The translations under genes were made by a program, and so were the position numbers. A stretch of 64,000 bases of DNA, taken from the NCBI GenBank assembly GCA_907165135.1, contig OU015567.1:2914001-2978000 (forward strand), in the 5' to 3' direction. Positions 36,192 to 41,139 of this stretch are shown here, in pieces. How positions within the stretch are numbered: position 1 is the first letter of the stretch; every line of letters begins with the position of its first letter. The notes under the pieces are model-generated. The model saw nothing but the letters and a program-made list of their open reading frames with translations, did not search any database and was not told the DNA's origin. This stretch comes from Oikopleura dioica (taxonomy: Eukaryota; Animalia; Chordata).

Positions 36192-37887
36192 ATGACGCTT
36201 CACAATTTTGAACCTCCTCTTCTCAGCGAAAATTTGTACAGCCGATTGTATGACTTGCATTTTTTGACCAGAGAATTTGGATATTTTTCGCCTTTTCAAA
36301 ATGGACGATATTTGGATAGTCCCAACCAGATTTCGAATTTGTTCGAGTTTTATCGAAAGCCTTGGAATACTTTTCAGAGAAGACGAATTCAACATGAAAG
36401 ATTTGATTTCGACGGGGAAGAAATAATTCTGGAAGACGAGAAGGAAGACTTTTATGATGCATTTTTCGACGAGCAAATAGAAGACAAAGAAGAGAATAAG
36501 CATGAGGATCATAAAGAAGAAAACAATAACTTTGAATTTATTGATGGGCCCGAAGACAATCTTGTTAATCGGTTTGCGGAAAATATTTTTGAGAAGATTT
36601 CGGCCTGGGAAGAGAAAACAAAAAGAGACAAAATCATGAAAGAAAAAAAGATGAGAAATAATATTGTCGAAATTTTACGGGACATAATCCTGAACGAGCT
36701 GAGATACAAGTCATTCTTTCAATCACAACAAACAACAAAATCGACCTTTTATCGTCAAGAAGATGGAAGATTCATTGTCGCCGAAGAAGCAGAAAAGATT
36801 TTGAGCAACAATCAAAAAGATGTTGAGAGACAACAGGACATAAGCGCCAAAAAAACTCCCCTTGAAAAATATGTCGAAAAAGATGAAGAAAATCGCGAAC
36901 ATATAATTTTGATCTCAAGAGATGAACGCAAAGAGTCAGAAGATAGAAGAAGGATCGAACGAACAAAAAGATTGATGGCATTATTAAAAATTTTGGAGTC
37001 TTTTTCTTATGGGCTTGTTATGTCACTGTCGATTTGTTATGATGTCACCATGCAGTCGTCAATCCTAGTTTTTTCCTTCTTTTTGGGTAAAAACAAGATT
37101 TATGTTTTTTTTGTGGCTAAACGTTATTCTTAGGTGTCTTGATGATTTTTTCTGCTGCCTTTTTCAAAGGTATGTCCTCTGGAAATGAAGCAATTCCATT
37201 CTCTTGTGACAAAGAAGTCGAGTTTGTCGAAAATATGAAAATTAAAAAAGAAGAAAAAGCACTTGTTCTCGACAAAAAGTCAGTTTGCCCGAATGTCAAC
37301 ATCAGTGATGAGAAATTAGAAACAGATGAAGAAGAAAATTACGACTTCTGGTGGGACACAATCAAGTTGGATCTTTCATTTGAGCAAAAGATGGAGATGA
37401 ATCATCAGATGATCGACTCCGGCGTTTTCGACATGGACTTTCAAAAGGCTGCTGTCGAAGCGCCCTCTATGACTTTGGAACGAAAGGGATCTGATGTTAC
37501 AATCTTGTGCTTCGAAGAAAATATCCACATCGCCTCCAAGGCCGCAGATGTCATTTTTGAAAGGCATCAACTGGAATGTGACCTTATCAAATTTTCAAAA
37601 ATGGATTCTCAAGGTATGATGCCTCATGAGCTTTTACATTCTTTTCGAAGGGATGGAGTTGATTCTCCAGTCGCTGCAAAAGACGAAACATTTGGTAGTG
37701 ATCGAAGATGAGTGGTCAAACACTGGAAACGAAGTTTTTATGGCGATAAGGGATTGTGAAGGCTACAGGTATGCCTGAAGTACTAGAGACGGGGGAAGCT
37801 TATAATATATGCTTCATGAATAAAACCATAATTAGTTTCTACTGCGAAAGGAAGACTGGATACGGAAGGATAATCAAAGTCAAGGAA
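36192..37887 (+). CDS. Hypothetical acidic/charged protein
   Basis: 313-aa and 190-aa open exons (36192-37133, 37139-37711) plus short 3' exons; no motif recognised; ends approximate. Confidence 0.5.
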
Positions 37888-38206
37888 TAAGAACGAGATC
37901 TTGAAGCCTCACTGAAGCTCTCTGTATAAATACTTCAATAAAAAAAGCTGCAAGATATTTAATAAAGTCTTATTAATTCAAAAAGACCCAAATTAATTTA
38001 ATAAATTCAAAAGAAAGAGAGTGATTAAAAAAATACAGAAAGGATGAATTTTATTTCAGAAAAAATATACAATGAAAATATAGAGAGAGAGGGACTCATG
38101 CAGTCTGGGCATTTTACTATCGATAACTTTGGCAAAATTTTTTACAAGTAAATGAGCGATTCTGTAAGTTTCTTAGAGACCATGGTGCTTTTTGCTGCTC
38201 GTCAGT

Positions 38207-40164
38207 TTATTGATATATCTTCAAAGGGGCTTTAAAATGTTTCGCTTTCACAAAACGCATTTTTAAAAAATTTTTCAACCCCTTCCTATGAAATATGCTT
38301 TTTGCAGGACTCATGGTGAGCTTTAACTTCGGAAAAATCGCATTACTATCATCATCGGAGCTTAATCCAGAGTCTGATCGTTTTGACTCGTCCGAATCAT
38401 CATCGGAGATCACGGAACTGATAGTCGATTCTTGTTCTTCTGAATTGTCCGCCACATATCCGGATGGGTTCATCGACTATCAGCGAGTTAAGAAAAAAAA
38501 AAAAGAAAAATTTCTCATTTTCCAAAAATAAAATTTCAGAATTCTTGGGACTCAGGTTTTGCTTAACTCTAAACTGAAATCGCCACATGTCCCGGCACAT
38601 ATCGGAGATGTTGCGCGTCGCTTTCCAGTCGAGATCTTTTAGCGCCTTATCGGGAGCACACCATAACCAAGCTACATCTCCGGCTCGGCGTTCCACAGTT
38701 ACTTAAAAATTTCATTAAAGAAACGCCCCCCTGGAGCTGTACCTGTAGGAATCGGTCTTCCAGAAGCTTCCCTGAACGCATTGACAAGCTCAAAAACCGA
38801 GGTGCCTTGTCCTGTTCCGAGATTGTAGCTTTCAAAACCGCGCGACGCAGTGTCGAATCTCTTCATCGCTGCCAGGTGCCCCTTTGCCAAATCCACCACG
38901 TGAATGTAATCTCTCATTCCTACGACGCAACTCAGTGAGCATATCCAGAAGTAACCTTACCAGTTCCATCATGCGTTGGATAGTCGTTTCCAAAAACGTT
39001 GAGGTGCGGTCTTCGGCCAATAGCAACTTGACTGACGTAGGGCATCAGATTGTTGGGAATTCCTCGCGGGTCTTCGCCGATCAGACCGGATTCGTGGGCG
39101 CCAACGGGGTTGAAGTAGCGGAGATTGACGACGGAGAGATTCGAATTGGCAACACAGGCGTCGGCGAGAATTTCTTCGACATGCAGTTTCGATCTTTTTG
39201 AGTTTTTAAAGAGCTCTTTTAATGAAAATCATTTCAGCTTTCGAAAACATTCCTTGCATAAGGATTGGTGGTTCCGCCTGTCGGTGATTCTTCTGAAAGG
39301 GGCAGATCATCAATTGTTTTTGCTGGCTGATAAACTGTTGCTGAAGAGCTAAAGATGATATTTGTACAGTTAGCTCTCTCCATTGCTTCTAACAGTGCGA
39401 CGGAACCACCCTGGTTCACGCGATAATAGCTTGTTTTTGGTTTTAAAAATCATGATTGGTTACGTGAAAATTAGTTTTATGATCGGTTTAAAACCCTAAC
39501 TAAGCGGTTTTTCTTTCGATTCTCCAACAGCTTTGAGTCCTGCGAAGTGAATGACGGCGTGTTTCTTTGAATGACCAAAAGCAAAGTCCAAGTCTTGTGG
39601 ATCCGTAACATCTCCAAGGACAAATTTTAGCCTCTTCGCGGCAATTGGTCCAACGATTTGTTGCACGCGTTCGAGGGAAGGAGGAATGCCACCAGCTCGT
39701 GTTGGAGGAGCGGTGTTACTGCAATCGTCGATAACTGTCACGTGATGGCCGGCTTCCAGGAGCTCGACAACTGTGTGAGAACCGATAAATCCTGCGCCAC
39801 CGGTTACTGTGAATAAGGTTTGAAAATGGTCGATAGCTGCGTTATTTCTGGAGAAAAAACTACGGTACAAAGAACCCTAAAAATGTTCTCCATTTTTTCA
39901 AACCGGGCCTAAAATTTCCATTTCGGAATCCGGAAACACCATTTCTTTCAAAATCTCTTCCGATTCAGGATCTTCTCTGTCCGATTCAACTATTTTTTCA
40001 AGTTCTTGCAGGATCTCCTCTTTGTGATTCAGAATCTCTTTTGAAGGTTCGGATTTTACGATTTCATCAGTTGGTTCATCGGCAGAAGCAGCAGGCGGAG
40101 TAACGAAAAGGAAAAGTAGAAAAGCGGTTGAGGCGCTCAAGAGTCGCGACCCATGAGCCTTCAT
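38207..40164 (-). CDS. GALE: UDP-glucose 4-epimerase family protein with predicted signal peptide and extended C-terminus
   Basis: [40 protein letters not shown] (YxxxK), [55 protein letters not shown]. Confidence 0.93.
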
Positions 40165-41139
40165 GATGATCTTCTGTTAATGAGAGCCTGATGATAAGTT
40201 ATTAAAGATAAGGAAGTCGTGCGAGCATGAGTACTTGAAATTATTACGTAGCTTTTTCTAGTTGACAATTATACGTAGGAAGTAGGAAGAATTCTTAATT
40301 GGATTTAATAGAAAAAATTTGCGTCAATTGCGATTAAGAAATTTGACTTTTAGTTTCTAAATAATTATTTGAAGTAAATTAAAGTTTCATTTTCACAGAG
40401 TAAACTAAAGGGTTACGGAATGTCAATTTTTTGTCAAAAAATCGATTTCTTATTGTATTTTGGCAATGAAAAACTGAAGTAAAAAAGGGATGATACTTTG
40501 AAAGTGAGTCATTTTCTTTAGCACCTTTTCGTTGATTTATTTGCTCAACATATTTGAAGGCTTTTCTCTTTATATGAATCTTACTTTTTTGTTGTTTTCG
40601 TTCAAGAATTAACGTCTCTTAGCAAGACATTTATGAAAATTTCTCCTCAAGTCACTTCAATTCAAATGTAGTCTGAGTTCGATGCCCTAGGGCGCGACGG
40701 GTTATCAGTTAAAAATGAAAATCTTGGTCTTTTATTAACTCTTGGTTAGGAGTAAACATAGCGTTTTTGATAGAGGAAGTGAGCAGAACTGCGTTAACAA
40801 TGATTTTTTTGCTTCATTGGGCAATCAAATTTTTCGTTTTTCTAAAATATTATCAAATGATTGTCGTTTTATAAAGAATAATTATTAAGGCTTTTATCAG
40901 AAACCAGCTTGAAAAAAGGAATGACATCTTCAAGTCATAGTTTTTGTACCGAATTGCTCGTATAAGCCGTTGAACTTCCTTGAAAATGTGTCCCTGAGTT
41001 GGATGATATTTACGCTTGTCAAATCGAATTATTCAGAAGTGTCAGGCATCGTGAATTTTGCTCCTCTAAGAGCGAAAGATCCCGATATAAATGCCAGGAT
41101 CAGACTAAATCTTATCTAATCACAATTTTAAAAGAAAAA

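Follow-up and report, generated by a model that had tools for sequence, protein, structure and literature searches.

Introduction

In animal glycosylation, the cytosolic uridine diphosphate (UDP)-glucose 4-epimerase GALE makes UDP-galactose and UDP-N-acetylgalactosamine, and SLC35 transporters carry both into the Golgi. Ordinary GALEs begin directly at M..(I/V)LVTGG, and the GALE of Cryptosporidium is without a signal peptide. Plant MUR4/UXE and GAE and animal UXS1, which are nucleotide-sugar enzymes of the extended short-chain dehydrogenase/reductase class, have an N-terminal hydrophobic segment and a linker and are described as type II membrane proteins; the catalytic domain of MUR4, a GALE-family UDP-xylose 4-epimerase, lies in the Golgi lumen (PMC3283625). 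Here, we analyse a GALE gene of the appendicularian Oikopleura dioica in a 64,000-nt stretch of DNA (positions 2,914,001 to 2,978,000 of contig OU015567.1, assembly GCA_907165135.1; hereafter the window, to which all coordinates refer). Its product is best explained as a GALE of the usual kind to which a conserved, putative secretory signal has been added, and we estimate at about 70% the probability that it is a soluble lumenal or secreted epimerase.

Its closest known counterparts are animal and bacterial GALE; its catalytic domain aligns end to end with that of human GALE (structures 1EK6 and 1HZJ), with which it shares the GxxGxxG motif and the equivalents of Ser132, Tyr157 and Lys161. Compared with an ordinary GALE, it adds 81 residues of signal and spacer at the N-terminus and a tail of ~70 residues at the C-terminus, and its pocket reads W-L-W instead of A-C-Y or A-Y-W. 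MUR4/UXE, GAE and UXS1 likewise belong to the extended short-chain dehydrogenases and have a comparable N-terminal layout, but the appendicularian segments are short and look cleavable. In its catalytic part, the appendicularian protein is a genuine orthologue of GALE. MUR4/UXE comes from a different kingdom. In the literature examined, we found no report of a signal-bearing animal GALE and no link between Oikopleura and an epimerase.

Results

Fusion of the signal exon to the GALE domain

The catalytic open reading frame (ORF) at 39496-39870 on the minus strand has no ATG and lacks the first Rossmann residues, as a sequence-only reading of this locus had already stated. The Rossmann start (V..) is found only behind the acceptor CACAG/ at 39807/39806 (slashes in sequences mark splice or cut points). 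An upstream ORF on the same strand (40164-39898) begins with the ATG at 40164, with an in-frame TAA 15 nt 5' of it, and splicing from 39909 to 39806 stays in frame across a 102-nt GC..AG intron. The strand ILVTGGAG is complete only after this splice, and the GxxGxxG motif is present as TGGAGFIG at 39804-39781. Because the RNA reads come from a divergent lineage (see below), the 39908/39807 junction was tested via orthologous mRNA and genomic contigs. For exon 1, a word search gave P0001 (68% identical) on L001, a 920-bp metagenome contig that also holds exon 2. For exon 2, an exhaustive search gave the match P0003, and a word search with P0003 led to transcript-derived full-length orthologues. 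No named database record for appendicularian GALE proteins turned up in the protein word search.

Among these orthologues, P0156 (506 aa, encoded by contig L004) has 87% identity to the whole window protein and 94% to its core, and its mRNA carries the same exon 1/exon 2 junction, ..DSGMEILVTGGAG (..GMEIL/VTGGAG). Exon 1 of L001 measures 277 nt against 256 nt in the window and ends in phase 1 in both; the two differ by three indels of 3, 15 and 3 nt, all multiples of 3. The similarity of L001 to the window stops exactly at the donor TTTAG/G and restarts at the acceptor CACAG/T. Intron 1 itself is not alignable, and its donor is GT in L001 and GC in the window. Upstream of the ATG, ~110 nt are near-identical in the window (40165-40280) and L001 (1-138), including GCTACGTAATAATTTCAAGTAC and an acceptor-like T(T/G)ACAG followed by AAGATCATC 9 nt before the ATG; this conserved region may serve as a spliced-leader acceptor or as a core promoter. 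In the more distant L004 mRNA, the 5' untranslated region (UTR) is a different one of 95 nt, with no spliced leader and no upstream AUG. With the same phase in L001 and the same junction in P0156/L004, the arrangement of exon 1 and exon 2 is far beyond chance, and orthologous mRNA and genomic structure together establish the fusion of a signal exon to GALE that the sequence-only reading had proposed across this GC-AG intron. In a tree, the eight appendicularian sequences grouped into a single, long-stemmed clade (100/100 support); the deep nodes of the tree were not resolved, and we make no claim about a horizontal origin or about placement relative to vertebrate GALE.

N-terminal signal and 5' ends

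The N-terminus of the window protein consists of MKAHGSR, a hydrophobic stretch and TPPAASA, followed by a predicted cut site ASA/DEP, and a heuristic test recognised its n-, h- and c-regions. The same layout and the same ASA/DEP site are kept in L001. All six signal-bearing orthologues (L001, P0156, P0157, P0154, P0152 and P0153) have a hydrophobic start with small residues at -3/-1. Their n-regions are charged or short, their h-regions span 11-15 residues and their cut sites are of the A-x-A type; across the window and the six orthologues, the -3/-1 sites are ASA, ALA, AFA, CGA, VAA and VAG. The signal first read from exon 1 of the window recurs in these relatives, and in P0157, P0154, P0152 and P0153 the signal is followed by a variable spacer and then M[DQ][IL]LVTGGAG. 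The maximum Kyte-Doolittle hydropathy over 10 residues was 2.44 for the window and 2.4-3.2 for the seven N-termini, while 111 ordinary GALE N-termini used as a control gave 1.78 +/- 0.21 (maximum 2.24), below the window value. Uncharged runs in the signal-bearing N-termini extend over 11-21 residues. All signals have a basic or neutral N-flank and an acidic C-flank; therefore, by the positive-inside rule, the catalytic domain is predicted to be lumenal. The N-terminal signal is a clade-wide feature, and its composition suggests that it would act as a secretory signal.

The same hydrophobic segment, if left uncleaved, would form a type II signal anchor, and the product would be a Golgi-membrane enzyme with the spacer as a stem and a lumenal catalytic domain. 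Plant MUR4/UXE and GAE and animal UXS1 are built in this way, with an uncleaved anchor of about 18 or more residues plus a stem, and the catalytic domain of MUR4 is lumenal (PMC3283625). An anchor would also solve the retention problem discussed below; it also agrees with the 21 consecutive uncharged residues that follow a basic n-region in the window and in L001, and with a stem-like spacer that forms a long helix in the AlphaFold2 model. However, the uncharged runs of 11-15 residues in P0154, P0152 and P0156 (that of P0153 is short by eye) are too short for a membrane span, and all segments contain Pro or Gly breaks together with small -3/-1 residues, as cleaved signals do. Judged by segment length, an anchor is possible for the longer segments and unlikely for the short ones, and for the family as a whole we consider it unlikely.

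Transcript 5' ends were available for several lineages. The cDNA contigs L006 (P0154) and L005 (P0155) start with a cap-switch remnant followed by the complete 40-nt Oikopleura spliced leader, which matched at 40/40 bases in both. In the full-length cDNA L006, the first AUG is the signal Met, 23 nt after the spliced leader, and in L004, L007, L008/9 and L010 the signal Met is either the first AUG or preceded by an in-frame stop. The ratio of nonsynonymous to synonymous substitution rates (dN/dS) in exon 1 was 0.40 against L001 and 0.54 against L004, which is fast but below 1.

These 5' ends also bear on whether the enzyme is mainly cytosolic, with Met82 as its start codon, reached either by leaky scanning or on mRNAs whose 5' ends arise internally from a promoter or a spliced-leader acceptor, and with the signal-bearing form being minor or regulatory. 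Met82 occupies the normal GALE start and is conserved in all orthologues that reach the region (M[EDQ][IL]L). Furthermore, P0155 from another appendicularian (L005, nt 9-120) has no signal, starts MDLLVTGGAG and lacks the C-terminal motif; it derives from a spliced-leader mRNA whose first AUG is the conserved Met, 72 nt (24 open codons) after the leader. The tail of the window protein contains a DSGxxS-like motif, and motifs of this sort occur in cytosolic degrons. P0155 may represent a paralogue, a loss specific to its species or an isoform made by internal trans-splicing, and the tree does not fix its position within the clade; as a different gene or species, it does not demonstrate an isoform of the window locus. 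In six lineages, by contrast, the assembled mRNAs reach further upstream, with the signal Met as their first AUG, and exon 1 is open, in phase and evolving at dN/dS <1. A mainly cytosolic enzyme is therefore, on these transcripts, quite improbable.

Catalytic domain and substrate pocket

Human GALE was the best solved match of the protein at 1e-116, with the Ser, Tyr and Lys residues aligned (searched with P0156, whose core is 94% identical), and it was also the best solved relative of exon 2 alone. The exon pieces of the window gene match the Pfam families Epimerase and GDP_Man_Dehyd in colinear order. Against the TIGR01179 galE model, P0156 scored 372.4 bits, well above the cut-off of 262.3, and P0154 and P0155 scored 362 and 367. 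The motifs SSSATVY and YARSK align with human Ser132 and with Tyr157/Lys161, respectively, in agreement with the initial view that the catalytic residues are intact, and dN/dS in the core is 0.02-0.04. These matches identify the gene as the GALE orthologue of appendicularians, with a predicted 4-epimerase activity on UDP-glucose and UDP-galactose.

The pocket departs from that of other GALEs. GDVAWLWC aligns without gaps with human GDVAACYA, in the P0156 core as in the window exon, so that a Leu replaces Cys307; the Leu gatekeeper flanked by Trp had been noticed from the window sequence, and it proved invariant in the clade. The W-L-W triplet is found in 8/8 appendicularian GALEs, including the signal-less P0155, and in 0/122 other GALEs, of which 84 have Cys, 17 have Asn and 1 has Leu as the middle residue. 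The residue at the Cys307 position decides whether N-acetylated substrates fit (PMC5349592). The W-L-W change makes the predicted substrate range uncertain; it may reflect a changed range, for example one that excludes N-acetylated substrates or that includes pentose or uronic UDP-sugars.

A loop encoded by exon 4 contains an N-x-S/T sequon in all signal-bearing orthologues and not in P0155. Sequon counts were considered as a sign of lumenal life and set aside, since each core has 2-3 and other GALEs average 1.96, which does not tell them apart; the positional conservation of this single sequon is only suggestive. Several unrelated GALE-like proteins among the matches of exon 2 (P0050, P0114, P0115 and P0136) have long N-terminal extensions with transmembrane-like segments before VTGG; GALE-family enzymes anchored in the membrane thus seem to occur elsewhere too, probably in protists or algae.

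Spacer and C-terminus

The acidic spacer varies between species in length and composition. In the AlphaFold2 model of P0156, it forms a long helix (residues 49-78), with a block-mean predicted local distance difference test score (pLDDT) of 87 over residues 51-70; the model further contains an N-terminal helix, a high-confidence GALE core and a disordered tail with a short helix at SIFHRYLNKL. The tail of ~70 residues (window 38173-38455) has a dN/dS of 0.04 against L004 even though it is modelled as disordered. Its motifs are shared by the window protein, P0156, P0157 and P0154: RSDSG[LV]SS (DSGxxS-like), [ST]-hydrophobic-F-x-[RKH]-[YF], and a terminal Leu in every case. The second of these lies across the intron 7 junction in the window (SIFHR/YINKL) and has the counterparts SLFAK-YVQL and TLFSR-FVHL in other species.

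The window protein ends in HHGL and its relatives in TREL, PRDL and TPEL. With soluble endoplasmic reticulum (ER) residents that have KDEL-like ends, these proteins share a signal peptide, an acidic C-terminal region and the terminal Leu. A human reporter screen of the KDEL receptor showed that position -2 strongly favours Glu and that -3 takes anything but Pro (PMC2140024, Raykhel et al. 2007). By these rules, HHGL (Gly at -2) and TPEL are misfits and only TREL fits loosely; KDEL-like ER retrieval is a weak proposition and is not supported for the window gene.

A signal peptide combined with no anchor and no fitting ER-retrieval motif (HHGL) would also be expected of a protein that is simply exported, be it to the house or to body fluids, with no metabolic role in the lumen and possibly with a non-enzymatic function. 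However, purifying selection on the catalytic core is very strong and all catalytic and NAD-binding residues are kept. UDP-sugars are not known to be available outside the cell. In addition, the word 'epimerase' is absent from the Oikopleura house papers examined. We regard such a purely extracellular role as very improbable.

Gene model and RNA reads

The gene has eight exons, with a coding sequence from 40164 to 38173 that encodes 504 aa (Table 1). The RNA runs carry the same species label; their reads (mean length 265 letters) were placed at 90% likeness and covered exons 6 to 8 in part and exon 1 by one read each. They were assigned to the divergent L004 lineage because 10/10 checked differing positions had the bases of contig L004. 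Within this lineage, 37 reads pass from 38286 directly into exon 8 (ATATCTGAACAAACTGACGAG), and four unspliced reads begin GTGAGA after 38286. Intron 6 is likewise removed, leaving the loose end CAG/TCTATGAACCC.., which corresponds to ..WRFQ/SMNP.. A further set of 51 reads suggested an alternative splice from 38573 to 38314. We dismissed it: the implied intron ends are TT..CC, and the sequence between the two blocks was marked 'not known'. Most likely, they stem from the normal exon 6-7-8 mRNA, whose acidic stretch of ~159 nt in exon 7 has diverged too far for alignment.

The 3' end read initially from the window sequence, at 38207, was wrong, as it missed the intron at 38285-38219. Seven-exon models that end at 38207 with a basic tail are ruled out by the orthologous mRNA and the 37 reads, which contain this further intron; the basic C-terminal tail is a read-through of intron 7, because P0156 and the reads require an eighth exon.

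Non-canonical introns make up four or five of the seven in this gene, far above the species rate, which has been reported as 11-12% in O. dioica (PMC8008620). For intron 2, no canonical alternative preserves the frame, and its removal is required because conserved orthologue sequence spans the junction. For intron 6, a canonical GT donor 6 nt further on (38567) would insert Phe-Arg; this donor is disfavoured, since the two-residue insertion occurs in no orthologue.

Table 1. Features of the appendicularian GALE gene in the window, from 5' to 3' along the gene.
Feature	Position	Strand	Detail or evidence
Conserved upstream region	40165..40280	-	acceptor-like TTAACAG/AAGATCATC 9 nt 5' of ATG
Exon 1, 256 nt, phase 1	39909..40164	-	signal peptide, acidic helical spacer, Met82-Glu-Ile-Leu
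Signal-peptide-like segment, aa 1-28	40081..40164	-	predicted cut after ASA
Acidic spacer, aa 29-81	39922..40080	-	fast-evolving, in frame
Met82-Glu-Ile-Leu, Met at usual GALE start position	39910..39921	-	orthologue alignment
Intron 1, GC..AG, 102 nt	39807..39908	-	spliced out in mRNA L004; 89-nt GT..AG at same position in L001
Exon 2, Rossmann start to ..GESKEKPLS	39500..39806	-	Pfam Epimerase 1.4e-14; human GALE 1.3e-18
Intron 2, 70 nt, TT..AG (GT..AA if slid one base)	39430..39499	-	GC..AG at same place in L001
Exon 3, catalytic SSSATVY (39350-39330), start of NPYAR	39253..39429	-	motif alignment with human GALE; Pfam
Intron 3, GA..AG, 59 nt	39194..39252	-	..NPYAR/SKLHVEE junction kept in all orthologous mRNAs
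Exon 4, completes YARSK (Tyr/Lys), carries NLS sequon	38961..39193	-	motif alignment; Pfam
Intron 4, GT..AG, 41 nt	38920..38960	-	gene model
Exon 5	38743..38919	-	gene model; Pfam
Intron 5, GT..AG, 41 nt	38702..38742	-	gene model
Exon 6, GDVAWLWC (38681-38658)	38574..38701	-	Leu at human Cys307 position, Trp either side
Intron 6, 97 nt, TT..AG (GT..TA if slid one base)	38477..38573	-	..WRFQ/SMNPSGY in mRNA L004/P0156 and 3 RNA reads of L004 lineage
Exon 7, GALE core end (NPSGY), acidic Ser/Asp tail with RSDSGLSS	38286..38476	-	orthologue alignment
Intron 7, GA..AG, 67 nt	38219..38285	-	37 L004-lineage reads and mRNA L004
Exon 8 coding part, stop TAA 38175-38173	38173..38218	-	one residue (I/L) different from P0156
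3' UTR to AATAAA (38055-38050)	38050..38172	-	sequence alone

A 190-aa ORF on the plus strand (37139-37711) runs towards the epimerase gene from its 3' side and is probably part of a neighbouring gene.

Discussion

The candidate secretory-pathway epimerase that the sequence-only reading had put forward is, after comparison across the clade, the best-supported account of this gene, and a normally cytosolic enzyme probably enters the secretory pathway in these animals. Translation from the first AUG would give a cleavable signal peptide (aa 1-28), an acidic spacer (aa 29-81), the GALE catalytic domain and a mostly disordered C-terminal tail. Steered by the signal, the growing polypeptide would pass through the ER translocon and be cut by signal peptidase after Ala-Ser-Ala. 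A cleaved signal in a protein with no membrane anchor would leave a soluble lumenal or secreted product. The epimerase, loaded with NAD and dimeric, would then reside in the lumen of the secretory pathway or be secreted, and a lumenal enzyme would interconvert UDP-sugars at C4 beside the glycosyltransferases.

Three observations weigh against this account. P0155 without a signal, together with the conserved Met82, indicates that a cytosolic form may coexist or even dominate. HHGL does not conform to the KDEL rules and the protein has no membrane anchor beyond the signal, and its predicted lumenal retention is thus unexplained. Finally, the RNA runs come from the L004 lineage, not from that of the window, and cover the 3' end only.

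A bolder proposal, which we hold only tentatively and think rather less likely to be right than wrong, is that the appendicularian GALE has been relocated to the lumen as the main or only GALE of these animals, with C4 interconversion in the ER or Golgi replacing the import of each epimer. On this proposal, the invariant W-L-W pocket would go with the changed substrate range mentioned above, and the relocation might compensate for a nucleotide-sugar transporter lost in a gene-poor lineage.

The corrected gene model has eight exons and a C-terminus different from that first read, and the W-L-W clade is a natural experiment in how the GALE pocket sets specificity. If a lumenal or secreted location is true, this would be the first such Leloir epimerase in an animal, parallel to the plant Golgi epimerases, and would provide a testable entry into how a chordate that evolves fast, has few genes and secretes on a huge scale has rewired its nucleotide-sugar supply.

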